A DNA stretch of 64,000 bases from Bigelowiella natans CCMP2755 (lineage: Eukaryota; Protista; Cercozoa). Under the pieces are notes generated by a model, which saw nothing but the letters and a program-made list of their open reading frames with translations, made no database searches and had not been told where the DNA came from. This document shows positions 729-62,931 of this stretch, in pieces; the stretch's first letter is position 1; every line of letters begins with the position of its first letter. The position numbers and the translations under genes were made by a program. Where the stretch lies: NCBI GenBank assembly GCA_000320545.1, contig ADNK01002140.1:124001-188000 (forward strand). Reading direction: 5' to 3'.

Positions 729-1829
729 TGTACTTGATATCACTATAGACTTGAATCGATGGTTGGTAAATATTCGTAGTGGATGCGGTGACCAGGAGAG
801 AGAGAGTGACGTAGGGGGTTGTGGTAGTTCATGCACCACCACTTGCGACAAGGGTTCTCAAGGGTTTTTGGCTAATACAGCCTTTTGATTCCCTGCGACA
901 TCCCATATTGATTGTCGTCTTGTCACCACCGCGAAAAGGCTTGAAAATGCGTGCAGCTGCTGGCACCTCTTGATGCTGCACTGCTCTGAGCGGTCCGAGT
1001 TGTTCTACAAATCGACCACATCGCAACAGTGATCGTCGTTTCTTTGATGTGCACATTCCATGGCTAGATGTGGAGGAACACACCGTCTTGAATTCTTCAG
1101 AACCTCACAGCCACGCGATCACTAGGTCAGTCCGCGCAGAGCAGCCGGTCACGCGCAGTGAGTGCGATGTGTTCGTTGCCTTGTGGACTGACACTCCAGG
1201 ATGTTTTCTCCAGTTCTGGGACCTTCAACAACTGCACGGGCTTGCTTCGACGTCCATGGATGAGAAGTGAGACACACACATGCAATGAAGAGTTTTGTCT
1301 CGTCTAGTCGTCGCCACGTGATCACGTGTCTTGCTACTTTTTGTTTGCACGTGCACCACTCTGCATTGCAGGCAGGCGCAGCGAACGCCAGGATGCGCCA
1401 TCCATGCGCGTGGACCAGCTGTAACATTGACTGGTTCCTACACCTTGCACACACACACACACACACACACATGCACGTTGATCAGCGCGTGCGTGTCTAG
1501 ATGTGAGCATGAGCGCGATTCCATGGCCATTAGCAAGCTGGTCCACAGACATGCTAGCGCATAATGACTAGATATCGCAGAATGGAGCATGGCATGACTC
1601 GGTCATAGTATAATAGAGCGCGCACTCTCTAGCGATAGTCTCTGATTTAGCGCTTGTGATGGATAAAATTGAGGTTTCATTAAATGCGCAAGATCGTAAA
1701 CTGAAATGGCTTTCCACTAGCAGTTGAAATGCAATCTCTTGTTCATCCAATTTCTCAACGCGCTTTCAAGCTGGTGAAACACCGCAGTGTCATGATCATG
1801 ACAGCATATGTGATCATTGTCACCATCCT

Positions 1830-3739: not shown

Positions 3740-4600
3740 ATGGATTTTGAAGACAATGAAAAAGAAGTTCTAGATGGTACGAACGACGATTTCGGCGAAG
3801 TAGATTCAGAACCCTGCGAAAACATACCAGAATCATCGCGAAAAGTTAAAGAGACACCTTTCATAATTTTCCATCATCATCATACCTTCGATCTAGATGC
3901 TGAGCGACACAAATGCTCGGCAGGCGATTGAAGTAAGGAGAACCCAGCGTTTGATGTGATTATTTGGTGAAGTTGATATTTGGACTTTGAAGACTCATCT
4001 TTTGGATAATTTATCGAAGTATGATGACGTAGAAGCCCACAGATGGAAAGCAGCAATATTGAGGACACTCTAAAGTCGTAAATCAGGTGAGCGTGACGAG
4101 GCATGGGATGGATTGACTTTAAATGGACTTCGGAAGATCTTAGATCTGCAGCCACACGGCCTCTAGACCTACGGTTTACAATGAAATCGCTGGAAAGTAA
4201 TTTAGCGCGTACGTCGCCGTAAATAGTGTCTGCTCTCCCACCAGATGCCTCTCCCGACCGTTGTGTTGCTATGATGTATGCGAATCGAATTATCCCAGAT
4301 CCGCAACAGGCACTCTTGAACGCCGCTGCTGCTTCATCATTGTTGCATGACAATGTTTCTAAATATTTGGTTGTTTTAGGTTGTCGCAGGGTCAAAATGC
4401 TATGGGATCATTCTTCATTTATTTGCACAGGAGGCATGAGCGTAGGACTCAAAACTCACTTTCGTTCAGTCCTCACTGAAACCAGTTCGAGGCACTGCAT
4501 TTTGCACGCTGCAAGTGTCTTGCAACACTTTGGAAATGTAGTTTTTCATCATTGTTTCATTGTTTTCAGTCTTGCAACACTGTGGAAATGCAGTTCATGA
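3740..4600 (+). CDS. Hypothetical multi-exon protein whose last exon runs into the TpA-depleted block (possibly damaged)
   Basis: In-frame model with canonical introns: MDFEDNEKEV...SSRK|MLSDTNARQAIE|MESSNIEDTLKS|SAATRPLDLRFTMKSLE|NASPDRCVAMMYANRIIPDPQQALL...YLVVL|GGMSVGLKTHF... No family recognised. Confidence 0.4.
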
Positions 4601-6045
4601 CACATTGTTCAGCTCCAACACTCGTTCATTCAATGGAATCACTTCGTGTTTCATGTCAAATTGCGGATGACGCAACGTGATGTGTGTGGCATGTGCAATG
4701 TCACTGCCTAGCTGCGTCCATCATTCAAATTGAAATCAATTGTGTTTCAATGTTCACACTCACGCAAAGCTCATCATTCACTTGTTCGTTCGTTCAGCAC
4801 ACTCCAACGATCCCCTCCAGGAAGGGCACATCCGTGCTGCATCGTGCCGCCCACACGTCACGTGTTGCACCACTGTGTCCAGAGCGCGTCGGTGATCGAT
4901 GTGTGCACTCATCTGGCACTGACAACAAGACTGCAAGACTGGAAGAACAAATCGTCACGAGGCGCGACCGTCGATCGATCGATGAGTTCGTGGCTTGTGG
5001 AGACAAACCAATGACCTGCGCAAGCGAGTTGCGCTTCGCCAGTCGTGAAGGACAGAGCCGCAGTGTGGCTGAACAAAAGTGGCTCACGTGCCACACCGCA
5101 CACAAGGGGTTGTGTGCCAGGCCAGCCAGCGGGAGCTGACGCAGTGCAATGCGCGCAACTGGACAAGCACGTGCAATCACCGTGCACACGCACGCCAGCA
5201 CGGCCTCGATCTTCCAACAACACCGGATCATCCGGCGACGACCAATTTTCGGACGCTCCCGGGACGTCTAGACGTCGTCGTGTCGCTTCGCAGCGAAAGT
5301 GCGAGCGAGGCATCGTGCAGGAAGCTGGCATTGCGATCGTGACCATCGTTCTGACAAAAGTGAGCGTCATCATCACCGGAAACTGCGATGCACATGGCGG
5401 TGTGGATGACAGGCAGTGCTAGCTGGGGTGCGTGTGATGAGGGCAATTTCACTGGTCCAGTGTGCAGCGGTTTGCAAAGTGAGTCTGGAAGTGAGGCTCG
5501 CATGTTGTTTTGCACGATGAACAATGAGCGCAACAGCTCTGAGCTAGACGTGCTGGAGTGGCACAGTCTGACAGTGAGACTGGAGACTGACGGCCAGACC
5601 AAATCGCGCAAGACTTGGTGGGACAGCGAAATCGACCAAGTTTTCATGTTGGGCCTAGCGCGTCAATGTTCGCCCATGCCAGCATGCGGCGGAGAGACCG
5701 TGTGCCATGAGCTTCATGCACATCATGCAGGGCTAGAGGGGACATTGCGTGTTGCTGGATTGCAGCATGCACATTCCAGCATTGCGGACAATGCGACCAA
5801 TGCATGCGTGCAATGGATGCAAGGTGTCTGCCATGCATCACAAATGCAGTGGCAACTAGCGGACACCACGCCATCACGCGTTGAACACGCACCCAAGTTT
5901 TTCCCAGACTTGAATTGGAATTGCACTCTGTTCCACACACTTTGGAGGCCTCTTTCGATTCACTGCCATTCATGAAAATGTGCTCATGATGGATCTGACA
6001 AATCCAAACACAGCTTTGACAATGCGAATGTTCTTCGCTTCTTTG
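4541..6045. other. TpA-depleted hypermutated block, core 1
   Basis: Only 7 TA dinucleotides in about 1505 nt, all within CTAG (4708, 5268, 5419, 5544, 5655, 5733, 5856). CA/TG-rich; CpG, ApT and ApA remain common. Confidence 0.9.
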
Positions 6046-6486
6046 CTACACGCTACAGCTTGTCCACTACTCTCAGTGTTGTTGTCCTTCCTGTTCTGTT
6101 CTTCTCATCGTTCCCCGCTGTTTCAACAGAGAGTGTCGCAATGAAGAGCAGTGATCACGTGTCTACATGCCACAAAGCTTTCCACCGTCGTCCTCATCAT
6201 GACCGTTAGAGTCGTTTTTAGGATTGGAGACACGTCAACTGATGTTGAAATGGATGAGGGCTCTGTGCTGCATCATGATCTAAATGTGAATCAACAAAAA
6301 TGAATGTCAGGGAGGGCAATGTGAGAATGGAGGACAATGTGTCTTCAACATGATGACAATGGACAACACATGTACCATGTACATGTTTTCACATACCACA
6401 CATGTGCCATCATCAGTAGCAGAGAATTCTGCATTGTGCACGAAGTGTGCACTGTGTAGTTTTGCTGTTGATCTCCACACATTCAC

Positions 6487-7101
6487 TCACTGCCCCGTCC
6501 TAATTCTAGACAATCTTTGGAAGGCAAATTTTGTGCTTAATGCTAAATGCGATGACACAGTATGCGTTGATCCTATCGCAACTACCGGCTTAGTTGTAGC
6601 CCATTTGAAGAGGTCCCTCGCAAAGTGCTGGCAATTGCTCGAAAGGTAGTCGCAATGATCAGAATGGCCCATGACGAACTTCTTGATGTCCATCATGGTC
6701 ATTTTCCTCCATGGAGTGCGGCGGGTGTGCTTTGCATCGATGAGATGCGTGTGAATATGGTGATACGCACAGTACTCACCGATCCTTCGACATTCTTTCT
6801 CATCCTGGCAGGCGATGAGTTCGACACCTCGGCGTGATTTTTGAGCAAGGAACCAGAGAAATGCCGGGTGGCCCTTGTCATCATCCCACGCCGCTGCTTT
6901 GATCTGCAACCACCAGTGCGCCATAGAAATCCCTATTGCTGGGTGTGAGATTGCACTTCCTATCTCTCCTGGCACCCCTCCAATGTAGGCAGACAGGACG
7001 CTTAGGTGCACCACCAGAGTTCGTGTTGCCTGCGTGTCGCTCAAAGTAGACACGTCATAGCCTACGTGCCCCTTGTCCGACGAAGAAGAGGAAGTACCCA
7101 T
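6487..7101 (-). CDS. Single-exon PPPDE/LRAT-like (permuted papain-like) protein, apparently eroded by TpA mutation
   Basis: ORF contains AHWWLQI (candidate catalytic His) and HCDYLSSNCQHFARDL, matching the Y-x-x-L-x-x-NC-x-HF motif with Cys at the expected Tyr position. Confidence 0.55.
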   Translation of the reverse strand: MGTSSSSSDKGHVGYDVSTLSDTQATRTLVVHLSVLSAYIGGVPGEIGSAISHPAIGISMAHWWLQIKAAAWDDDKGHPAFLWFLAQKSRRGVELIACQDEKECRRIGEYCAYHHIHTHLIDAKHTRRTPWRKMTMMDIKKFVMGHSDHCDYLSSNCQHFARDLFKWATTKPVVAIGSTHTVSSHLALSTKFAFQRLSRIRTGQ

Positions 7102-7751
7102 GAAGGGGAAAGAATGCACAGACAGTTTTGGAGACGTGGACTGTTTCAGGAGAAATCCTCTTAGGTCTCATACTGTTCGTTGGGAAGGAGCTGGCTCGCG
7201 TCATAGTGCGATGTGGGTATCGGAAAAACATCGAAATAAAAATATAATTAATGAGATAAATGGGACGTAATCCACATTTACGACAATCCTTTATTGAAGT
7301 CTCTTAAACGAAATTAGGAGTATTTCTGTCTGCTCCGACAGGTATCTCAGAAGTTACGACAATAAAATATTTCTGGGAAAAGCACATACGAGTCCCACAC
7401 ATCCCATTGAAAACGTGATGCTACATCTTAAACAAAACCTTCGAGCATGAATTCTTTTCTGTGCGACAGTTCCCTCTTGATATGGCACACTTTGATGGAT
7501 TTTGAACGTTAAGACTTTGTGTTTAAGCTGTCGTTTTTCTTTACCTCCTGCATTCGAGGATGATTCACAGGAAGGAAATAAACTTTCAGAACAGTAATTG
7601 ATTAACCATAAGATAAAAATACATAAATCTATCTCAGCAATATATGTTTGGAAAGGACGTCAACAATCATGTGACCATTCCAGGAATTTTAGACGATTTA
7701 GATCTTCCTCTAAAATCTTAAAAAGAAACTTCGACTGCACAGAATATTAAG

Positions 7752-10199: not shown

Positions 10200-11279
10200 T
10201 ATCTCGAAGTCACCATTGGGTAGATTTCCCCAGAGTCGCGTTTGCGTGAGCTTGCATTATTTCGCAATTTGCCATTGCTAGCAGTACAGGGTTGTCGTAC
10301 TTCTACAAGATCGTTTATGCACAAATAATGTCATTCTTACTAGAGTCAAATCGCAAACCTTTGGTGTGTACAGAGAGCCCCGAGGGTCGATGCATAAGAT
10401 GAGTTTACTATGGTCATGCCAAATACGTGCATCCACAAATGGATGTCATATCGAACGTTTGCATTGTTTCTCCGCCTGTACGTTCAGCGCTACCGATTTG
10501 GGCTTTGGTCACGTCCCACAGCATAATCCATCGTCAGTGTTGTACGTGTGGTGGATTTGCCTTGTTATTGCACGCAATGCACCCATCTGCATGGCAAGCT
10601 GCTAGATCGTACGCGAATATAGCCTTCGTGGCTCTATCACCCCGCATGCACAGTCAGTACATCTAGACATGCTAGCTAGCATGTGCAACCGCTAGACGAC
10701 TATCTAGCCGTGTACGTGTACTAGTGTGTGCGAGTGGCTCATGCCATTTGCATCGATTTGATCTAGCGACGGGCATAGTCTAAAGGGCTCTGCCGCGTGC
10801 CCCTCTTAAAACATGCTAGCATGTGTGCTTTAGGACATATGTGACATGTGACATAGTTCACGTGTGCTTAACCACGAGCCATTATTAGCCTGCCCTTTTC
10901 CATGCACTAATCTAGTAATTGCCATGATGCCGTGCAAGCTATACTTGTGATGTTAGCGCTATCTAGCTATGCTAGTATGCTGCGATACATTTCACACATA
11001 CTGCATAGCATGCGAACAAAGTGCCGAACACGACACAGTTGTGGACACAGCTCGTGGATACAGCTCGATCATGCTAGCATGTATAGCATCGTATTAGGCA
11101 AATGTCAAGCAAAAATACCGTCTACATCTGTAGCTAGCTGCGATCGCGATACTCACAACGCAAATCAATGCTAAAACACATAGAATAGTCATTTTATGTT
11201 TTTGTCGATTGTTGTGAGTAATAGCTAGATGTGTGCCTGCGACTCAAATAAACAGGAATGAAGTACATAAATAAATTCT

Positions 11280-15690: not shown

Positions 15691-16490
15691 TCAAATGAAG
15701 ACAATTGCGATTCTCAATAAATCATTATACACGGCTCCCTCTATACGATTAGTACAAGTAAATCACGCTCCTCGAAAGAAATGTATGGTTCGTGTCGAAT
15801 TGGAACGGCATGGAAATCTGTGCATGCTAGCGTATACGTGCATCTCAATGGACACAGTTTACACGATGTAATCTTTATAATGTGTAGATGTGTACATCTC
15901 ATGTAAACGTACGTTGTACACACATCTCACATGTAAACGTGTTCGTATCAAATGATTCAAGTTATATTCATAGCATGGTTGTGCGCGACTTTTTAGTTCG
16001 ATTGTACATGTAGTATGCATGCACAGTGAAATAACGCAATCTATATGTGTAATATGTGATGGTCAAACATTAAAACCCGGTACTGTGTGCTAGCATGGGC
16101 CAAAATTATTAAGCGCCTTTCGAACGCATTACAAGCGCTACATCGCGCATTTTATGCATGCCCGCCAAGGCCAAAAGCGATGCTCGCTCTACTAGTCTAG
16201 TGGACAATGCTGCACAGTGACACCACCTAGCTATACTCGAGCAAGCACACGATAATCATCACGGTGACGTATAGAGATTTAGCTGTATGTATCTTGAGAC
16301 TTATAAATAAATGTGACCACGCCTTTCTAGATGTCTACACGGCCATAGCTTATGCTAGATAGCATGCACACGCATGACACCATACAAGTTTAATTGCACA
16401 CCTAGCGCTCCTAGCTGTAGCACTGTAAAACTTAATCAATATTCATTAAATTTACGCACTAATAACTTAAATAATAATTATAGAAAATAT

Positions 16491-18090
16491 TTACAGCGTT
16501 ATATGTCCATTCCAACCTTGGAACACTACGAGATAAGGTCCAGGAAACGGCACAGGTCCTAGATACGGGAGAACATTATGCACATACATTTTGAATAGCA
16601 AAAATATTAGATAGGCTATTTGGGATTTATGTTACGCGTGATCTGGGAATCAAATTGAGCGAAGAACGGATATTTTAGACGTGTACCGTGATTCATACTA
16701 AACAATGTATACAAAAATGCTCGCTGCCTGTGTAATTACTACCAGTAAACGGATTTAAACCGGGATTTACAGGATTTGGTATTCCTGAAAAATCACAAGT
16801 ATTCATTTCTCTTTTCTTCCCATCAACAGATTGGATGAAAGAGAAAACTCTGATCCTTATTATTATGATGACAGTGATGATATAGATCACACTGCTATGC
16901 GTAAAAGACGCAAATAATACACCTAAAATCCATGCGATGGGAGCTAACGTTCCAGTCCAAAAAGGTGCAAGAAACGACCAGTCCGAAGTTGCTGCAATTT
17001 AATGCTGCATTCATCACAATACCTCCTTTACCAAGTGTGTTTATTATCACAAACTATTTTATTCTTATACTTTAAATGATGATGAGCCACCACCTTGTTA
17101 TATCTACTGTATAACTCCTTATCATTCACGTCGTATTAATCGTTGTGATATATGTTTGTAGTGTTATTGCACTTCATGATTACGAGTTGCAATAGCAATG
17201 AATGCTCCAACTGCAGCAAACAAGGAACACACGATCAAACTAGTTCTTGCACCCAAATCGGCTTCAAATTTTAAGATTACTCCTAAAAAAACAGCAGCAG
17301 CAGCACAGTTAATATGGTAGTAGTAGTAGCGGTATTGGTAGAGAAGTTGGATTTGAGCGAGAAATAAGGAGACTCTCTCCTAGTGGAGGCTATTAAACAA
17401 ATGCTGCAATACGACAGTCAAGAAGAAGAAAAAGATGAAGAAGAAGATGATGATGATGAGAATGGTGCAAAAACTAAGTGTCAAAGAAAAATCTCTCAAG
17501 CAATGATGAAAACAGGAGCAACTATCCGCAGTATTTACTACCCAAAATGACTGTTACGATTATAATGCTTAATGTCCAGAGGATCTTGATAATCCTGATA
17601 ATAATAATGGTGATTATAAAATAGTAAAAAACAGCCATCTTGACGATGACGACGACGTATCTATTTGTTGTACTAAAAGTTTTGGTTTTACTAGTACTGG
17701 CCACTTATAGCGGATGAAGTACTTCTTCTTCTTCCTCTTCTTCTTCTTCTTCATATTCTTCTTCTTCATATTCTTCTTCTTCTTCTTCTTCTTCTTTTCC
17801 CTCTTCTCACTCTCTCATTTTGTTATAGCCAAGAGGAGGTAACACTACCTATTGGTTTTGAGTTGTGGGCAAATAGTTATTGGTAATAGCATCAGAGGGG
17901 ACAGTGGAAGTAATCCCAAAGAGATGGATAGCGTAACTACCAACAAACATGCATGCAATAATAATAAGCGCCACAATGTATTATAACCCACCCACCCCCT
18001 CCCCTCATATTTCGTATAGATAGCAACATGCCGAATTCCTTGCTACCGTGGGTAGATGTGATGGTATGATCTCTGAGATGTGCCATCGTA

Positions 18091-25172: not shown

Positions 25173-25943
25173 GATATCTCTTGCATGTAGGGAATCATTG
25201 CGAGAATTTATAAGCTGTGCCACGTGCATCTACACTGCAACACATTCTAGCATTGTTCACACATGCTAGCATGGCAGATGCACATTGCTAGACAAGATCT
25301 GGACATGCATGCGCCCATTTGTTAGCCATGCTAGCATGCTGTGCAGCTAGATGGTTATATGGCATGATGCATGCCCAGATGCACGCACAAATATCTCTAC
25401 ATGCATAGCTAGCTAGACAGCTGCATCACGCTAGCGCGTGCAAATTTCATTGGATGAATGATCACATTGAAAACATTCAATCACTTTGATCATAGCATTG
25501 CATCCGTCTCATCATGCACACATCTAGACATCCAAATGTGATTGTTTCCACGCACATTTCACATGTCATTGTTTTCTAGACGTGGAACATACTAGCATGA
25601 AATGCTGGCACAATTATGTCGATCATGTACGTGACGTGCGGCATGCGGTAGTGCGTCACGTTGAGCATCATGCAATGCTAGAATGGCTAGATTGCCGCAT
25701 GATGGAAATCATGCGTGCGCATTTTTGCCTTGTACGTAGCTAGGTAGATTTAGACACGTGCATGGCTCATGCGTGCGTGGCTGTTCAAGATTGTTGTGTT
25801 ACTCAAACATGCTGGATTTTGTATCAGTCGTCTGTGTCACACTACTAAATCTAGCGCGGAATTACTAATCCAAAATCCACAGCGATTTACTACTAGTCTA
25901 CAATTCAGAACACTGCGTAGATCAAAATGCCGAGAATAGACTA

Positions 25944-37856: not shown

Positions 37857-38379
37857 TAAACGGGCTAGTCTTAAGACGAAGGACTACCGCTTGCTTATCC
37901 TGGGAAGAGGTCGACCGATACATTGTGACGAGAGCGAGACTTTGCAGAATGTCACAGAGCGCTCAGGAGTAAGTGCTGCTACCGCTAAGAACAGCTCTTC
38001 TGAATCAGCAACCCCCGCACATCCTCAGTCGAAAGCTTCTAAAGGCCGTCCAGTATTGAGGCTTAGCTTCACTTTGGAACCTGTTGCTGATGACGAGCCT
38101 ACTATTAATAGATTCCATAAGACCGAGGTGCTAGAGAGTCATTTTCCTGTGGCAGAGACAACAATGGAATCGACGAAACAATCCGAAATAAGCGAGCAAC
38201 AGTTGCATGATGAGGATAATCAGGCTGCTGCTCTTTCACAAAGTATGATAGCTTCCTCATTCTCGAAGAAAGTTACATTATCCGAGAACGATAGTCAGAA
38301 GGGCCATTTGCCAAAGGTTGGTGCAAAAAAAACAAGAAGACGTAGTTTTTGGGACAAACTGCGTGGGAAAAAAATCTAG
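34772..38379 (+). CDS. Large hypothetical protein (coiled-coil, SH3-like and ubiquitin-like-looking segments, poly-S/T/Q runs)
   Basis: ORFs 34772-36058 and 36547-38379 join through a middle exon: FFIPLTIT|GKPVLER...DLDV|DDLGGAID. Upstream exons are possible. Domain guesses are weak. Confidence 0.55.
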
Positions 38380-39400
38380 TAGACATCGGTCATGCAGCAG
38401 CGATACGATCTTCGTCAGTCAAAACTAATGACTTGATGTGCCTCCTCTATTAGTTTGCTAAGCTAGTAAGGCTACGACCTAGTTTAAAATTTTGTGGTGT
38501 GTATATGAGACGGATGTAATGAATTGATTAAATCTTTTCAATGGTCATCCTAGCTGTGCATAGGCAGCGGCTACAGCTAGACAGCGCTAATGTTGTGTCC
38601 GTTTGTTTCCATGGTCACGTGTTTCATGCATGTGAAAGCATCTTCTCAGTTGCGTGCATGTCGAGATACAGCGCGATCTATGCTAGCTATGGTGCATACA
38701 TGTCATCCTCATGAGCAGGTATGTGAACAACTAAGCAAGCGATCTACTCCTGAACAAAGCGCACAAGCTAGCAAGCGCAAGAACAGCCGCAAGAGACACG
38801 TAGCAGCCTTGCAGTCACGTAGTGTCACAGTGTAGCCTTTTTCCTGTTCGATCAGAACATGGATCGATGCTGAGTAGTACTAGAGTACGACTAGAGTAGG
38901 CTAGCTAGCTAGTAGGCTAGTAGGGGGGCATTTATTAGAAGAATCTGTTGCAATGTCTAGCCATTCACATTACAGTGCTACACTACTGATCAAATTGAAT
39001 GAGCTATGCTAGTCCACCCAGCACCCTCGATTTGCCGCTCCAGCTCTAGAGCTAGCTAGCTGGCGCAATGCTATTATGTGATGCTCGTATCACTACATAC
39101 ACGCTTCCCTGTGCCACCCTAGTATGCTCTAGTACTAGCTAACTTCGCGCGATCTGAGTATGTGCCACATCGTGCACACCTATGCTATTGGACACGCGCT
39201 TACGACAAAATATGAAATACAATTTTTGCTGCGATCGATGCCCATGTGCACATGGAAGTTACACAGAAACAAAGTAGCTGGATATCTAAATGTAAAGTCC
39301 GCCGATTGATGTTCCAGGAGAAAATATCAGTTTTAAAATATTATTGCACCCGTAGGGAGCCTATATGATGTGATACCATCATGTCCACAAAAGGAAACAG

Positions 39401-41238
39401 TCACCGTGTGGAACTCAAATATTTTCCGAGTGCCTTCAATCCGAAAACAATACTTGCTTGTCTCCTTGCCTCGAAGACAAGTAAGGTAACATGACACTTC
39501 TCATCGTCCGTGAAATCGTACCCAAATACTTCATAGTCACTTCGTGTGATATCTTGAGGGTAGCAAGCACATTTCTTGATGAATTTCTTTACCTGCTTAT
39601 TGAGGTATTTATTTATTGAAGCGTAATCGTAGTCATCGTTCTCTATCCCATATAGACGGTGCACGTAGTACCATACTGCCCTTCGAAAAGGCCCCGTGTC
39701 TACATTTCCAGCACTGGTTAGCCGTTGATACGTTAAATTGTAGATCAGATCGAACTCGCTGTTAAGCATTGGTGCAAATCCTTGGTAGTATCTCGACATC
39801 AACCCGTATCCGTGAGAGCGCCAATCGTAATCCTGTCTTCGATGTAATTTTTCTGTCTTTATATTGAAATCAACGTAACGCTCAACATCCTTTCCAGTGA
39901 ATTCTGGATACTTGCTCGACGTGTCAGTGAGGTTGGTCAGGCAGCAAATATCAACTGAACTGGCTTTCTGTGCCGCCAGCTTCTTCTTCTCAACTATCTG
40001 TGGACGTTTTTCCTTAGTATCTAACAGCTTCAAGAGATTTTCTCTGTTCTTTTGTACCGTCTCCCTTGTTTGGTCGTCAAGCTTGTAGTCTTTCGATATT
40101 AATGTGGAGCGGGTTGGATTCTCCATATCTATCTCTGGAAGAAGACCCATCCCGTGCACCAAGCCGGTGAGTGAGAAAAATGTGGCAAAAATTGCAATAA
40201 TTTGGACAAGCTCGGCTACTGTCCAGCCATTTGATCCTTCCATCTGGCCGCCTATGTCCTCGGGAGTAAGTTTCCAAGGCCGGTGAGCCAACAGTTTTCC
40301 TAGTTTTAAGAGTCGTTGTATCTTTTGGGGTGCTTTATCAAGGCCCTCTAACCAAGAAGGTTCTCCTCTGTTGAAAGTAAATTCGCTCTCTTGAAGGGAG
40401 ACTAAGTACTGACAGTTGTGCAAACTACTCGCAATGATAGCAAGATAGTTCCGGATTGGTACCGATAATTCCCCCTCTTCCCTCATTAAAAACTCTGTTG
40501 TCATTGTGAAAGCTTCCAAATACAAAGGATGCCATCCTAAAACTTGATCAATATGACTTAACCTTCCCCGCGAGGCGAAAATGTCCTCGAACATTTGCCT
40601 TACCACTTCATCCTTCGGTGAAACGGGAACAAGAAGGTTTGATGGGACGAAACTAGATGCTTGGCTAGACGCCGGATTATCATTCTCATGTCTACGATAA
40701 AGACATACAGTAAGCGCGATTCATCTTAAACGAACTATAAGATGACCTTTTCAAGTAGTCCTGCATTAGCTCTCTTACTTCACTGAAAGGACACTGTAAA
40801 AGAATCACACATTGGATATTTGTTCAGTTACGTTGTCGTGTTTGTTGGGATCGTATGGATTACCTTGAATGCAAGACGTCGAACCGTTGGCAATAAAATA
40901 TCCGAATAATCCCCAGTTTTCAAAGGAAACAATATTTTGGCTGACTCCTCCTCCTCTTCCCTCGGAACCAAGTTCTCAAGGACAGAATAAACGCACGAGT
41001 GTAGTGCCTTCGCCCTGTCGATGATGATGACTAAATAAGAGCAATGTCTAAATTCCTATCCATATTGTTACCTTTTTTGTTCGCAAGAAATTGTCTGTTG
41101 GATACACTCCAGTATGGAACCAAAGTGCAAGTGGAAGAGTACATCACGCTTCTGATCCAGGCTCCTTAAGCTTTTCAGCTGGTCTTCTTTGGCGGGCATG
41201 CGCTTAAATCCACAGGTTTGGGGTCTCTTTGAGGTCAT
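39401..41238 (-). CDS. SESN: Sestrin (PA26 family)
   Basis: GWHPLYLEAF...EGELSVPIRNYLAIIASSLHNCQYLV, KLLAHRPWKLT, WTVAELVQIIAIFATF, DYDWRSHGY, FRRAVWYYVHRLYGIENDDYDY, EKCHVTLLVFEARRQA. Short 5' exons extend to ATG 41238. Confidence 0.9.
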
Positions 41239-43107: not shown

Positions 43108-43905
43108 TTATTATCACAATGTAAAGCTTCGAAATGTCGTCTCTTTGTGACACAGACATGTACACGCATGTGTCTGTTAGATGTGCACACGCGAAACATG
43201 TCAGATGCTCGCGGTGCAAAAGCAGTGCCTCACTACAAAACTAGAAAAGTAGGATGCATGCACGGACGCACACCGCATAGTCAGCATGCATGCACAGTCA
43301 CAGATGTACATGCACATCTAGACATGCCTAGATGGACATGTGTGTGCTAGCTCTAGCTAGCTATATAGCGTGGTCATGCATGTCATAGTCATGTCTAGAT
43401 GTGCGTTCTAGCGTAAAACAATGGTAATTACAATGGCCGGAATATAGGAAAGAGAAATGTAGTAATGGATCGATCACACGATGCTGCCATTTACAAGTCA
43501 CACGTAATAGACAGCCTACCTAGCCACGTGTGTGTACACGTACGTGCCTACGCATGCGTGCGGCACCTACAACTATAGACTTTGTCTATTGTTACACGAC
43601 GTACACCACTAGAAAATGCTAGTGCGCATGCAACACATCATACTGTCCTACGTCATGCCATACCATTATTGCACAACCGTTTACATGCAGGTGCACGTAC
43701 ATTCATCGTGACACATCTTTTTAACTAGATAACAACTAGGCGTCTAGTGCTCGTGCGCCCCTGGCACTGTGTGTTGTTCCCGATCATTTCCTAGTCGTTA
43801 CACAAACAACACCTGACTCGACATGCCTAGAAATATACGCCCACCGCTTGGAATTTATGCCAACGAATTTTGAAAATAGAGTTCACAGTCAAAATCATTT
43901 TTGCT

Positions 43906-47969: not shown

Positions 47970-49034
47970 ACTAGCTGAAATTGGGAATAGCTATATCATG
48001 TCTAGAAAATTATGAAAAGTAGGTCTGAAAATACGAATTCGGTTCAGTCCACACTGTCTAGCTAGCTGCGGCTTGTTTTGTACGATGCTAGCGATGCTGT
48101 GCAAGCTGTGCATGCTAGCATGCCTTATTCTACATATTATATTTGTGGCAAATCCGAAGAACCATTCATTCTAGCTATCTAGCTATGCTAGCTACCTAGA
48201 TATGTTGCACGACACAATATCGCGATCGGTCCGTACGTAATTCCGTATGTACCCTACACTAGATACCTGTCACGCGCTACACATCGTAGTGCGCATGCAC
48301 TGCATAATAATCGCGCCGCTCTAGCGCTATATAGCTGGAGCTAGCTAGCTAGCTCTAGAGCTGAACGGATGTGTATATGTGCATGTGCTTCGCGGCATAG
48401 CGTACGCGTATCAACGCACTAGCATTAGCTAGTTAGAGCCAGCCGCGTAATGCCCAACTCTAAAACTATGTTTCTTGAAAAAATATTTATTAATAAAGTA
48501 CAATGTACATCAATCTTCGTGTGCAACCAACCTCGTACGTTACATGCAGATAAATTACCTTGACGAATGACGGTAATTTGTATTTTGACGCTACATTGCG
48601 AGAAGCAGACTTTAAAATATTCCAGGACAGAAGAAAACTAGTTATTTACTAATCTGCTAATTTTTCTTTTCTTTTTTCTGGAACTTGACTAAATGAGAAT
48701 ATCTGACGAGATTCCTGTACTCTCTGAGGTACCCTTTTGCTCACATACCATCTGTGCATAACTTACACGATGTTTATCAAAGAAAGACGCATTGGTGCAT
48801 AGAATATATGAAAGACGTTGATTTTAACTTTGTTTAGGTACACTTGTACGAACACGAATAAATTCTCTTAACCATCCCAGTTAACCAATGTGATGTGAAT
48901 TGAAGTAATTTCTTAAAAGGAATGAAACATCTTATTTGTAGAGATCACCTCTAATATTGCCAAAATATTGAGGGATTGACCAAGAAATGCTATACTTCAT
49001 GTGTGAAAACTTTCTGAGGGTTGTCAATCATCAA

Positions 49035-50576: not shown

Positions 50577-52014
50577 GATGAATCCTCAAAATATTCAAGA
50601 GATCCTTATTGGTTCTTCGTGAACAGTTGTGGTGTGAAAAACTATGGTGAGTTATTCCACACTGCTTGTCACAAAACTCAGTTATTACTTATGACAATGC
50701 TCTTAGGGGAGATTCACACCCCTTTATGTTCGTGTGGAGAGCTCGAGACCCTTGCTATTTGCCTCGTTCAGAAACAGTTATTACGGACCGGTGCGCGGAT
50801 TCTCCGGTTTGTTGGTTGGTTGTGTTTTACACGGCGGCCTCCGGAATAGGAATCGCTTGCTTTTTGTACTACCAACCAGCACAGTCGTAAAGTAGTAAGA
50901 CTCACTTTGTCCTTCGAACGCTGCTCAGCTTTCGGTAAACTAGTTCTTAAGATTGGGGCAATGAAGCCTACCGTTGGCGCAATACTACCCTACTTGCTTG
51001 GAAATATACCTCATTAGGCTAAAATTCCCCTCCATTTGTTAGAGAAATAATGTCCTTGTTTAGGTATATATTGGAGCTACAATACACAAAAGTATGTGGA
51101 ATATTTGAAGAAATATTATCATTTTGGTGATAATCAAAACAAAATAGCATGATTTAGACACCAATTGAAATTTTAGAGAGCACATCTTTTATCTTGTAAA
51201 ATATTCTTAAATCTCTCTCATACTTAATTATTGCAGACTGAAAGAGCAACATCGACAAAATGAAGGATACTTTAAAGTGGAAAAACTAAGGCATATCCCA
51301 GAATCATTGATTTCGCCATATTAAAACATGCAGCCAGTGCATCGGATAACATGACTTCACAGATCAAAAGAACACAAGAAACTAATATCTACTTCCTCTC
51401 TCTTATGTAATATTCCCCAAAGTTTTATAATACGAATTTTGTATTGCATAGGCATATTTTATTGTTCTCATCTTTGTTGTATATTCTCTTTATTGTTAGC
51501 AAACTTGGAGAACCCCTCTTTCCGATTCAGACTTTACTACCCAATAACAAATTTAGATTATATTCAAAAATGGACTACAAACAAAATAGGCGACATCAAC
51601 AAAATGAATATGCTGTTAGTAGTTGCACTTCATTCATGTCGCGGGTTGCAGCAAAAAAGAATTAGGCCCGTTTGATTGTATTTTTTAAGTTTCATTGCTA
51701 AAAAATGGAATTAGTCATAAGAATGGCATTCTTTTTGTATTTATATCAATAATACCGGCGCTATCGGTGTCTTTATGTACTTCTTAAAACTTCCTCGCTC
51801 TTTGAATATCCGATAGTTTCAATATTCTCGGTGGTTCCGCAAATTAAAAAGTCCCTTTTTCAGAATGGCCGATGCTTTCAATAATTTTCGCCGAGGGAAG
51901 ATTTCAGGATGGATTAGCCTACTTTTTCATCAAAATTGTTAACATGCGAAATGTTATTTCTTTGCTCTTTGGTGAAAGTCGGCTCGGCTTTTAGGCGAGA
52001 TAGGATTTGAGTAC

Positions 52015-53596
52015 AAGGGGCAGATTGATTTGACATGCGGCCGCTGTGCAACAACTTGACCCACGTTCAAACTCGTGTTTTTCCTTTGATCTTCTCGTCT
52101 CTCTGCCCCCTGTTCCGTTTCTCAAGTCCCATTGGAATCACTTCGTCACTTTGTGCTTCTTTTCTTCTTTTTTTTTCTCAACTCGTTCATCGTTCACGGT
52201 GCTTGTTCCTGCATCACCCTCGACATTGGCTAGTTGTGTCACTCACCACCATCAGGGTGCTGACAATTCCTCGCAATGCCAGAATGGTTGTTGTTGAGGC
52301 TCTGCTGCACGCAAACGCCTGTCTCCCATGTGGTTCAGGCGCATGCAGATTTGATCAACGCTTTGTTCATTGTTCATTGTTCATTGTTCATTGTTCATCG
52401 TTCTTCTTCTTCTTCTTCTTCTTCTTCTTCTTCGCTCTCCTTTGCGTTCGTCCCGCACCGATGATCCTCCACACATTGCACCTGCGCAGTGATCCTCTCA
52501 CCGTTGAAACCACTTCGTTCAATCATTCACTCATTCGTCTTCGTGTGGTGGAGATTTCACGCCGTCAACTTTTCGGGGTGGCAATGACAACTCACAACCC
52601 AGAACTGGAGGTAGTGGGTCGTGACACTTTCTCAAGTCCAGAAGTCACGCGCCTGGGCATCACCTGCATGGACCCCCACCCCCCACTCAATTGCAACTAG
52701 GTGATCAGTGTGCCTCGCTGTGACGACATGCACGGAACCCTGGAACTGCCAACGCTTCACCACGCACGTTGCACCCCACGCGACACACAAAGCCACGTGC
52801 GTGCAAACACCTTTGTGTGCACTTTGTTTCTCCCAGCCTTGATTGTTCTCTGTGCACGCATGCCAATGTCATGCCCACTTCGTGCCACTTCAATGCACGT
52901 GTGCTCTTTCGTGACTCCACGTGCACGCACTCGTGTCTGATGTGCCAATTTGTGCCACACGTGCGATGCGTGAACCCCACCTCTGGCCTCTGGCCCTGGC
53001 TAGCTGGTGACAGCGAAGTGATTGACGTTGCTGCACACGCCTAGACGCACACAGAGAGAGACACGCACGCACAAAGGCATTTGTGTGCACTTTCCAAAGC
53101 TTTGTCTCTCTGGACAGCTGGACAGACTGATCAATCGGATTTGAGAAACCCAAACCCAGTTGCCATGATCGAACTCCGGCACGACTAGCAGCATCGTTGA
53201 CTAGTTGAATCGAACCTGTGCCCTCCTAGCCTCCAGCGCATCCAGCGCATTCAGCATGAACCCTGAACGAACGTGACGTAGTTTCTCTGTGCATGCCACC
53301 CCAAGTTCACCATGGCACACACTGGCAGACGCATCGCAGCATTGGAGCACACAGCACACAACATGCACGATGTCTGCAACGCTTTGTGGTCACGGAGTGC
53401 CAGAGTGAGCTAGTGAGGGGACAAAGCCAAAATGCCATCATGCCAGCATGGCTAGATGGTTCGTGGCGTCATCACATCATCAGTCGATCTGTCTGTGAGT
53501 GAACGTGACGTTGAGACAGTCAGTGCTCTGCTGTCCACCCCAGCACCCGCTGTCGCTCGCATCGCCGCATGCTGGCATGCCCTGCGCTAGCCTGGC
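52015..53596. other. TpA-depleted hypermutated block, core 2
   Basis: 12 TA dinucleotides in about 1580 nt: 10 in CTAG and 2 in GTAG. Confidence 0.9.
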
Positions 53597-53777
53597 GTAA
53601 ACATGGCGGAGGAACGTGAGGATGTATGTTGTGATGTTTTCGCATCAGATCCAACATCAAATGGATGATGACGTGCCATGGTGCACATGCATTAGGCGAA
53701 GCTGCCCACGCAATGTGGTGTGTTTGCACAATCTTTATATTCAATCGACAGTGATAATAGACACAGCAATACACTAA

Positions 53778-53978: not shown

Positions 53979-55188
53979 TTATGCAGAGCAGGTGTCGGCA
54001 TCACACAATTCTCTACAATATCTTGATTTTTTAGGCCAACCATCGACTGTCTCGTTCTCGCACCATTTAAGGATTGATAGACGTAACTTGTCCTCAGACT
54101 CTTTAGAAAATGGTACTGAAGGATATCTAGCATCTCCCACCGATATGGAGGGAATCAAATTTACAGCATTTTTAAACCCATCCATACCTGGCTCAACGTT
54201 TGACTTCCATACATCCATAAAACTAGTGCACAATGCCTGTAATTTACGAGCTTTGGATAGGTCACCTTTTAAGTATGTGTCACGGAAATAATTGTAAAGG
54301 TCTCCAAGTACGTTGAACTGCGAACCGACGTTGCCTGTAATGCCCATCGATAATGTTCCAAGCATTATCTCCTCTCGACCAGAAAGAACCTCAAACTTAC
54401 CAGACTCATAATTATGAAGTTCTGTTGCATCTGCTAATCCCTGGTTGATGTAAAGTCCTGTGTATTTAACCCCTGCGTAGTTCACCACCCCAATCGACTC
54501 AAATGCTCTTGTGAGCCCCATCATGCCATCACTGAAAGCAACATTGGTCATGTGAGGAATATGATAGTAGTAGAATGGGAGTCCAGGTACTTCGTTTGCA
54601 ACCAATGCCATCGTATTTGCGAGTGCAATCGTTGATATTGGGCGGAAGAAGGAGGGAGCCATTGCAGCGATAGCGGATGCTCCGTGGGCTTTTGCATGTC
54701 TTGCTAGCTTCTTTGCCGTGCCAATATTCTCGCATCCTACGTGCACTATGGAACGAATACCATAGCCAAACCTTTTTTCGACAGCTTCCCATTCCTCGAC
54801 GAGAGCCTCCCTCTCCTTCTGGTTCATCTTGACGGACTCTCCCGTCGTTCCCGTGAGGAAAATCCATTTCACACCAGTAGAATTCAGCCATTCAGCTTGT
54901 GCCTGGACTTTTGTCAGATCCAATTCCCCCCGTTTGCTGAATGGGCTATGTATTGCGGCGATTACACCGTCAATTTTCAATGGCTTTATCTGCAAATCAA
55001 TGTAGACTTCACCGATCATCTCAATCGACATCAGTTCTGTTAGCACGCACCACCTTTTCTGGTCGGGAGGCATCTGCTGCGTTCGAAGTGGGCACGAGCG
55101 ATGCAATAAGTCCTAAACACAACATCATGGTTGCACTTCGAAGTAAAGGAGTCCTCCCCCTTCCAAACTGCACCAGCAAATCCTGCAT
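53979..55188 (-). CDS. NPL: N-acetylneuraminate lyase / DHDPS-family aldolase with an N-terminal hydrophobic leader
   Basis: IFLTGTTGES, IVHVG, AMAPSFFRP, LPFYYYHIP (Tyr relay), GVKYTG (Schiff-base Lys) and VGSQFN. Intron 54990-55053 gives RPEK|IKPLKIDGVIAA. Start at 55188 or 55128. Confidence 0.85.
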
Positions 55189-61913: not shown

Positions 61914-62786
61914 TAGCTGTGACACACATTACATGCATGTGGCTTCTTGACGTTTATGAGCGCCCTGCTCAAAATTTGTAAATACAAATGAGTTAGAGTA
62001 AGGTTGCATGAACATGCCAGATGCAGCCAATGATGCGATGACACGTACGACGAAACGAACAACATCTAGAACTAACTAGAGAATGAGATCGGCTACATTG
62101 GTTGTAGCGATGAATGTTCTTGGCTCTCGCTAAACAATGGTAGAGGATGTTGAAACAGACACTAGAATTAAGTCATGTTTGTAGCACACGCGCGTCTCAT
62201 TCGGTGCACTTCCAACAGTGATGCCATCATGTCATCATTAGCGTGCACGTGCATGATCGAATCGCTACGCTAGCACGCATCTGGTGGCACACACACAGAC
62301 ACACAAGCAATCGCTACAGCATGCAACGTTACGTTGTGGCCATCTTGCTGTGATCATGCATGAAAGTGCGCGGCATGCACATGTGTGGTGCATGTTGTCA
62401 TGCCTCGGCACGTGTGAAAAAGGTGTGGCAGATGGGCTACGCATGGTCTAGATGTGGTGGCGGACGTGTCCGTTGTTAGCGGCGCACTAAGCAATAACAA
62501 CGCGGCACGCTGTTGCCGTGGGACTGCTGCGGCTAGAGCAACAAACAAATGTACGTCGTCTCCAGATGTGCACGCACACGCCTAGTTGTTGAAGCTCGTC
62601 GCTACGCTGTCCTTCATTTCGCACATGTGTTGTTGTGTTGTTGCGTTTGTCTTGAGGCACTGACATGTGTTGCATAGGCTCAAATTAACATGTGGCAATG
62701 GAAACAAACAGACACAACATAAGTGCTGTAGCCGCTGCATTGCACAGCTACAGCAGGATTACCATTGAAAAGATTTAATGAATCCA

Positions 62787-62931
62787 TTACATCCATCTCA
62801 TACGCTCAAATTCTCCTTTGCTTGACTCATCGGATATTAGTGCTATTAGACCTGGCTCTTCGATTTGTTTGGTTAAGACCTTTGACCTTTTTAAGTGTGA
62901 TAATGCAAATCTTTGAATGAAAGGAATATGA

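Follow-up and report, generated by a model that had tools for sequence, protein, structure and literature searches.

Evidence for saturated, flank-graded TpA hypermutation in short segments of the Bigelowiella natans nuclear genome

Fungal repeat-induced point mutation (RIP) represents a regional, saturating, and dinucleotide-specific transition hypermutation of nuclear DNA that displays fairly sharp borders and is presumed to serve in genome defense. It proceeds by C>T changes at CpA, thereby creating TpA. De novo hypermutation of TpA to TpG or CpA has been reported for Bigelowiella natans from mutation-accumulation experiments (Mettrop et al., bioRxiv 10.64898/2026.01.13.699255). In 15 such lines, 231 of the 302 nuclear single-nucleotide mutations mapped to two hypermutable regions, namely an integrated giant-virus (nucleocytoplasmic large DNA virus, NCLDV) region on scaffold 10 and a virophage region on scaffold 146. 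With a single exception (230/231), these were A>G or T>C changes, nearly all at TpA, and they arose with per-site, per-generation rates close to 1e-7 to 1e-6, which is ~1000 times the background rate. In the genome as a whole, the count came to 124 clusters of TpA-poor, CpA+TpG-rich 1-kb windows and to 324 gene models with low TpA, and an ADAT2-like adenine deaminase, Bn78255, was proposed as the candidate (bioRxiv 10.64898/2026.01.13.699255). TpA hypermutation is already known for this genome, with experimental support, from this 2026 preprint. Described here is a 64,000-nucleotide stretch of B. natans CCMP2755 DNA (contig ADNK01002140.1, positions 124,001 to 188,000, hereafter referred to as the window). 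One segment of it, designated core 1 (4541..6046), is very probably the saturated end product of TpA-targeted A:T>G:C hypermutation in the B. natans nucleus, with rates graded by the flanking bases. No strand is assigned to core 1 or to the other islands, edges, and motif runs discussed below.

Within the 1508 bp from 4540 to 6047 there are seven TA dinucleotides (at 4709, 5269, 5420, 5545, 5656, 5734, and 5857), whereas 83 are expected from the base composition of the segment itself (Poisson P ~5e-27). Other 1508-bp windows of the 64 kb contain a median of 101 and never fewer than 64. All seven copies lie within CTAG, a tetramer that accounts for 5.5% of the background TpA sites, and the chance of a 7/7 outcome is ~1.5e-9. 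A first-pass annotation, made from the letters of the sequence, had described 4541-6045 as nearly free of TA with all seven remaining copies in CTAG, and that description is confirmed. Outside of the three islands considered here, the longest run without a non-CTAG TA is 183 bp. Relative to the composition of core 1, CA occurs at 1.80x and TG at 1.64x the expectation, and the counts of 170 and 152, respectively, indicate that both strands were equally affected. ApT, at 1.09x, has been kept, as the annotation had also noted, and AA/TT is at 0.99x. CpG is at 0.93x and is not depleted. The earlier statement that CpG was retained is an understatement, given that CpG is ~1.7x above the level predicted from converted background DNA.

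The direction of change is opposite to that of RIP, as the first-pass annotation had maintained, with TpA at 0.08x and CpA at 1.8x in core 1. In addition, RIP needs a duplicated sequence and a premeiotic stage, whereas the lines of the preprint were propagated by single-cell bottlenecks, and no second copy of core 1 was found within the 64-kb window by self-BLAST, by purine/pyrimidine 28-mers (which gave microsatellite matches only), or by transition-tolerant alignment. The closer counterpart is the system of the preprint, which shares with core 1 the organism, both-strand transitions of TA to TG/CA, and the combination of a low rho(TpA) with a high rho(CpA+TpG). Indeed, core 1, with values of 0.08 and 1.72, lies beyond both per-window cut-offs used there (at most 0.43 for rho TpA; at least 1.52 for rho CpA+TpG). 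The islands of the window differ from that system in being ~1.5 kb in length, in lacking a viral or transposon protein signal, in having no second copy in the window, and in lying downstream of host genes. At 1.5, 1.6, and 0.33 kb they are also shorter than a cluster as defined in the preprint, namely at least three consecutive 1-kb windows. The window belongs to scaffold_54 of the Bigna1 assembly, for which Table S2 of the preprint lists a single mutation, an ordinary G>A at 98484. Few de novo events are to be expected at core 1 because its TpA sites are exhausted.

Two further islands carry the signature. Core 2 (52013..53598) is an independent island that lies beyond the same thresholds in much the same manner as core 1; it retains 12 TA, ten in CTAG and two in GTAG. 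Island 3 (1007..1335) is short and CTAC-bounded, with three TA, all in CTAG, and the surviving TA that flank it at 1006, 1335, and 1439 are in CTAC. For a mass balance over the three (3423 bp together), TpA sites were classified as unprotected (D-TA-H, where D is A, G, or T and H is A, C, or T), half-protected (C-TA-H or D-TA-G), or CTAG. The ordinary DNA of the window served as background, and every non-CTAG TA in it was converted in silico to CA or TG to provide the predictions. Unprotected TA is absent from the islands as compared to 142 copies expected (-142), and half-protected TA occurs twice as compared to 75 (-73), an expectation that ranges from ~38 to 75. CTAG is found 20 times where 12.7 are expected (+7). 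The products of unprotected sites, DCAH/DTGH, number 475 versus 328 (+147). Overall, CA+TG amounts to 707 in the islands, and in-silico conversion predicts 711; for the individual cores the count is 322 in each, versus predictions of 313 for core 1 and 330 for core 2. CA is approximately equal to TG in every island. The match between the gain in CA+TG and the loss of TA implies that the losses were essentially all transitions, that they occurred on both strands, and that the starting DNA was host-like. The frequencies of CC/GG, AG/CT, and GA/TC likewise match those of the converted host DNA. The both-strand, TpA-targeted A:T>G:C transition process put forward in the first-pass annotation is therefore upheld by this balance and by the de novo mutations in the same organism; the mutation-accumulation evidence that it had called for exists in the published data, where such mutations are seen to arise de novo.

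The edges of the islands provide an additional view of the order in which sites are lost. On the right, core 1 fades over ~0.6 kb into a graded, partly mutated flank (6047..6650) with 22 TA in ~600 bp, and the survivors are ordered by context: five are unprotected, 16 half-protected, and one is a CTAG, as compared to 62, 33, and 5.5%, respectively, in the background. The first seven TA to the right of the core (6047-6281) are four CTAC, two TTAG, and one CTAA, such that all are half-protected (P ~4e-4 against a background share of 32.6%). This is the arrangement that the annotation had anticipated, in which sites protected on one strand return first. The left edge (4224..4540) is comparatively sharp, with 11 TA of which seven are half-protected, and the final two before the core (4443 and 4539) are GTAG. 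A 27-nt local direct repeat on the forward strand spans this boundary (4517..4595, with copies at 4517-4543 and 4569-4595). The island copy has CA where the outer copy has TA, with one transversion besides, in what is a single, anecdotal comparison. Both edges of core 2 are sharp, and an intact (AT)19 repeat lies 180 bp outside of it. Just left of core 2, the segment 51001-51500 has a GC content of 30%, and there is a very sharp compositional step at ~52013.

The surviving CTAGs might owe their persistence to a shield, for example site-specific adenine methylation or a protein bound to a functional CTAG motif, rather than to a flank preference of the mutator. The CTAG-dense patches of 0.45-0.76 kb that recur downstream of genes in the window do suggest a functional motif. 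The protection, however, is graded, with the single flanks in CTAC, TTAG, and CTAA already protecting at the edges. TAG contexts are under-mutated in viral DNA as well, and an enzyme preference fits these observations better than a shield specific for 4 bp. With single flanks conferring protection, a shield becomes superfluous, and it is considered unlikely.

The annotation itself had proposed a stricter rule, namely that A is changed to G only in TA[A/C/T], with CTAG fully immune and the survivors representing all of the original CTAGs. In its favor, CTAG accounts for 7/7 of the TA in core 1 and 20/22 across the three islands, the edge survivors are half-protected, and the density of CTAG in the islands is not under that of the background (20 versus 12.7). 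The spectrum of new mutations reads differently. The "3 nt around" column of Table S2 of the preprint was tallied with the strands collapsed, and the tally was verified by word counts. The 235 de novo TpA mutations comprise 74 TAA-type, 57 TAC-type, 81 TAT-type, and 23 TAG-type events, the last consisting of four A>G changes at TAG and 19 T>C changes at CTA. The TAG-type share is 9.8%, whereas in the background DNA of the window 21.8% of strand contexts are of this type (P 1.7e-6). TAG/CTA contexts are thus ~2-4-fold under-represented among the de novo events, but their number is not zero. Because TAG-type events are reduced yet present, a G following the A (on the opposite strand, a C preceding the T) is disfavored without conferring immunity.

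The strict rule also fails to account for the remnants of CTAG in the islands. Mutation of a CTAG yields CCAG/CTGG, which occurs 22 times in each core versus predictions of 7.4 for core 1 and 7.8 for core 2, an enrichment of ~3x, and its maximum in any 1.5-kb block of converted background is 14. Among the GC3 tetramers that contain CA or TG, CCAG/CTGG stands at 2.8x and the others at 0.8-1.8x. Its sites occur in runs resembling the CTAGCTAG runs of unmutated, CTAG-dense patches. A CCAG-G-CCAG-CCAG run in core 1 (5117..5129, with CCAG at 5117, 5122, and 5126), for example, may be read from its spacing, which is like that of the CTAGCTAG runs, as the relic of a CTAG run. At 5419..5426, one surviving CTAG sits next to CTGG in CTAGCTGG, and core 2 contains a CTGG..CTGG..CTGG-CTAG-CTGG run at 52983-53007. 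The enrichment in both cores indicates that CTAG was eroded, only more slowly. When the excess CCAG/CTGG is added back, each core had originally ~22-24 CTAG, a number matching that of a 1.5-kb block with one CTAG-dense patch; survival of CTAG in the cores is then ~37%, with roughly 60% converted to CCAG/CTGG. Finally, the strict rule predicts only CTGH/DCAG as products of half-protected sites, whereas the observed excesses are symmetric (CTGH/DCAG +19 and CCAH/DTGG +18). Given the 23 TAG/CTA events and these relics, absolute immunity of CTAG is improbable, and the claim is replaced by one of graded rates.

The symmetry of the half-protected products suggests that a C before the T gives the A of the same strand a degree of protection comparable to that from a G after the A. 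In a simple flank model, in which the rate is multiplied by a factor f for each protective flank, the islands yield f ~0.34, with a decay of 1.0 for CTAG, 2.9 for half-protected sites, and a predicted 8.7 for unprotected sites, of which 0.02 survivors would be expected. The mutation-accumulation spectrum yields f ~0.25-0.6. The two values would therefore agree, assuming the ancestral composition of the islands and normalization with this window. CTAG would then be the slowest context, ~10-fold slower than an unprotected site, and not immune. Were the base after the A the only one to count, the products of half-protected sites would be expected in a ratio of ~31:5 (19:18 observed) and the TAG-type share at ~4% (9.8% observed); this model is disfavored, although the data are thin. 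Neither flanking context nor CTAG is analyzed in the preprint's main text or its accessible supplements, and literature searches for a second description of the process, or for CTAG in Bigelowiella, returned only Mettrop et al. The graded flank hierarchy that takes the place of strict CTAG immunity thus appears not to have been described before; it, the CCAG/CTGG relics, and the secondary targets at C-A-Y and A-A-T are additions of the present analysis.

These secondary targets emerge from a comparison of the cores with converted background. CpG is present at 1.85x in core 1 and 1.55x in core 2, with ACG/CGT at 2.0x and 2.4x and CGC/GCG at 2.6x and 1.8x, respectively. CAT/ATG is reduced (0.88x and 0.70x), and AGT/ACT is raised (1.47x and 1.39x). 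The CpG excess in both cores is concentrated in R-CG-Y, with ACGT, ACGC/GCGT, and GCGC at 2.3-3.2x, and is much weaker in CCG/CGG and CGA/TCG. Of the four non-TpA transitions in the NCLDV region of the preprint, three are ATG>ACG and one is ATT>ACT (Table S2), the same changes as those to which the word frequencies point. Together these values suggest that C-A-Y and A-A-T are slow targets of A>G change, with G after the A once more avoided, although an ancestrally CpG-rich sequence could also give rise to the CpG excess.

With respect to chemistry, an enzyme that deaminates adenine in DNA to inosine is most likely, and adenine deamination at T-A would be the simplest chemistry for a process that is transition-only, both-stranded, and graded by context. 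The A of a 5'-TA-3' step on either strand would be changed to G, such that TA becomes TG, or CA as read from the other strand. The target would comprise ~1.5 kb of non-coding sequence lying downstream of a host gene, in addition to the ~0.6 kb of graded right flank. A site would be slowed ~3-fold, in a roughly multiplicative manner, by each of two neighbors, namely C before the T and G after the A. Unprotected sites would accordingly be lost first, followed by half-protected ones (CTAH/DTAG), and CTAG last, at ~1/10 of the unprotected rate. In the cores this would correspond to a loss of all unprotected sites, of ~95% or more of the half-protected sites, and of ~60% of the CTAGs to CCAG/CTGG, with the seven CTAG survivors of core 1 being the remainder of a CTAG-dense patch of a kind that recurs in the window downstream of other genes. 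Once TpA is exhausted, CpG appears to accumulate through the secondary activity on C-A-Y and A-A-T, which is much slower.

Several known enzymes invite comparison. The TadA/ADAT2-ADAT3 tRNA adenosine deaminases act on an A that follows T or U (U33-A34 in tRNA), in keeping with the need for TpA. Their natural substrates often carry a G after the edited A, whereas that neighbor is disfavored in the B. natans islands, and the link to such an enzyme is that of a candidate only. Amphioxus ADAT2 has been reported to edit DNA, as cited in bioRxiv 10.64898/2026.01.13.699255. Of the mechanisms listed in the first-pass annotation, adenine deamination in DNA is the leading candidate, and a TadA/ADAT-like deaminase would fit the pattern in its T-before-A context. 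Hyperediting of double-stranded RNA by ADAR resembles the present pattern in its A>G changes, its preference for U before the edited A, and its clustered hypermutation. It favors G after the edited A, however, and the annotation had correctly pointed to this mismatch, in that T before the A is required here and G after it disfavored. Unlike RNA editing by ADAR, moreover, the change in B. natans has become fixed on both strands of the genomic DNA. The AID/APOBEC enzymes likewise mutate foreign or mobile DNA by a deamination that depends on context, with neighbor preferences that are graded, but they deaminate cytosine (C>T), whereas the change here is A>G.

Error-prone patch synthesis by a polymerase of the pol eta type at WA hotspots, another mechanism on the annotation's list, could take the place of deamination. 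In somatic hypermutation, TA is the strongest hotspot of pol eta within the WA motif, and A>G is its commonest error. Both features fit the islands. The polymerase also makes A>T and A>C errors and targets AA, whereas the CA+TG balance of 707 versus 711 leaves no room for transversions, 230/231 of the mutations in the hypermutable regions of the accumulation lines are transitions, and AA/TT is at expectation (0.99x) in core 1. This explanation is regarded as highly improbable. Least probable of all is an intrinsic composition, that is, a foreign insert or selected sequence that was free of TA from the start (for instance as a means of evading a TA-cutting nuclease or a TA-targeting transposase). 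In its favor, no homologue displaying the ancestral state was found in the window, and the islands have a GC content of 0.53 as compared to 0.48 for the converted background. Against it, in-silico conversion of host DNA gives matching values of CA+TG, CC/GG, AG/CT, and GA/TC; the edge, graded and ordered by context, is the mark of mutation rather than the border of an insert; the pattern is common to three unrelated sequences; and mutations of this kind arise de novo in the same organism.

Several points weigh against the interpretation of core 1 as a product of flank-graded TpA hypermutation. The direction of change there is deduced from composition, from the one 27-nt repeat, and from the preprint, rather than from alignment to an unmutated homologue. 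The original composition of the islands is assumed, and the CCAG/CTGG and CpG excesses could be partly ancestral. The 2-4-fold deficit of TAG contexts was normalized with the background of this window, and the NTAN make-up of the NCLDV region itself may differ. Within that region on scaffold 10, furthermore, there are three A>G changes at TAG and 17 T>C changes at CTA (binomial P 0.003), which a strand-symmetric model does not explain. The TAA/TTA, TAC/GTA, and TAT/ATA pairs on the same scaffold are strand-symmetric (Table S2), which hints at a strand or orientation effect confined to the disfavored context. The right edge of core 1 retains seven half-protected sites where ~2 are predicted at f ~0.35, unless the stretch was originally rich in GCTAC. 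Lastly, deamination is a deduction both in the preprint and here, with the enzyme a candidate only.

As to their surroundings, the islands lie in nuclear DNA of Bigna1 scaffold_54, and the window is rich in microsatellites. A sestrin open reading frame (39401-40606, minus strand) is 100% identical to a Joint Genome Institute (JGI) protein whose 90%-identity cluster includes EP00466_Bigelowiella_natans and Bigna1 89738 (estExt_fgenesh1_pg.C_540123); its next relatives are from other chlorarachniophytes. Over the 21.8 kb analyzed, the marine metagenome sequence ERZ23491473 scaffold_361 (ENA) contains no TA-erased, CA/TG-rich islands and was judged uninformative. It encodes a sestrin homologue with 60% identity over half of the query, is gene-dense, and has a GC content of 56% and a generally low TA content in its coding sequence. 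The neighbor of core 1 is a reading frame on the minus strand (6487..7119) whose stop codon (6487) faces the island; it gives a weak PPPDE/Peptidase_C97 match (E 0.017), below the Pfam cut-off. The 3' part of this reading frame falls within the graded flank of core 1 and may represent collateral hypermutation of a host gene. Core 2 is faced by the 3' end (stop 53979) of a DHDPS-family gene on the minus strand (53979..55106; Pfam PF00701, E 4e-37), the TA content of which is normal, and lies upstream of an HMG-box gene. A Pfam search of the core 1 reading frames of at least 109 aa and of the flanking frames yielded nothing meaningful, no Rfam family was detected in the 64-kb window, and an exact-protein look-up of the largest island reading frames gave no record. 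The longest stop-free stretches of the islands are no longer than those of dinucleotide shuffles, such that nothing there points to coding, and transition-tolerant local alignment of the three islands to one another was no better than that of shuffles. Self-BLAST of the whole window gave one unrelated 120-nt repeat. This element of ~120 nt, the only real dispersed repeat of the window, occurs at 38504-38623 and, as the reverse complement, at 62687-62802, with 80% identity, in or near two CTAG-rich patches.

The patches dense in CTAG/GCTA are located at 10602-11228, 16090-16562, 25247-25896, 38376-39138, 43241-43830, and 47971-48432, with weaker ones at 1497-1720 and 62001-62500. They measure 0.45-0.76 kb and contain 9-21 CTAG each (15-21 in those used for comparison with the cores), the densest reaching ~8x the background density. 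They lie just beyond the 3' ends of genes, two of them between convergent gene ends. Unprotected TA is scarce in them and CA/TG abundant, but their overall TA content is not low, and their CTAG density exceeds what sparing alone explains. A termination-region motif is one possibility. Relics of such host-type patches within the islands favor a host intergenic origin, and the islands are read as DNA of host type, located downstream of genes, that came to be targeted.

The timing of these events can be bracketed. The numbers of the preprint give a mutation rate of ~1.1e-5 per generation for a TpA site within an active region, and saturation would thus take on the order of 1e6 generations. No unprotected TpA has been regenerated among the 475 DCAH/DTGH sites, from which, at a GC>AT rate of 3.4e-10, we infer that the islands were hit within the last ~2e7 generations.

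Regulated A:T>G:C hypermutation of chosen segments of eukaryotic DNA, in the direction opposite to that of RIP, is remarkable in itself. The window described here sharpens the footprint of the enzyme by way of its hierarchy of flanks, its slowly eroding CTAGs, and its secondary C-A-Y/A-A-T targets, and provides a basis for the in vitro testing of candidate deaminases. It also hints that the targets are perhaps neither viral nor repeated. A more far-reaching proposal, offered tentatively and with somewhat less than even confidence, is that the mutator reads a 4-bp duplex context (D-T-A-H the fastest and CTAG ~10-fold slower), has slow targets at C-A-Y and A-A-T, and strikes short, sharp-edged, apparently single-copy segments of host type in addition to viral inserts. 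If this is true, targeting in B. natans would follow the local state of chromatin or transcription, rather than foreignness or repetition.

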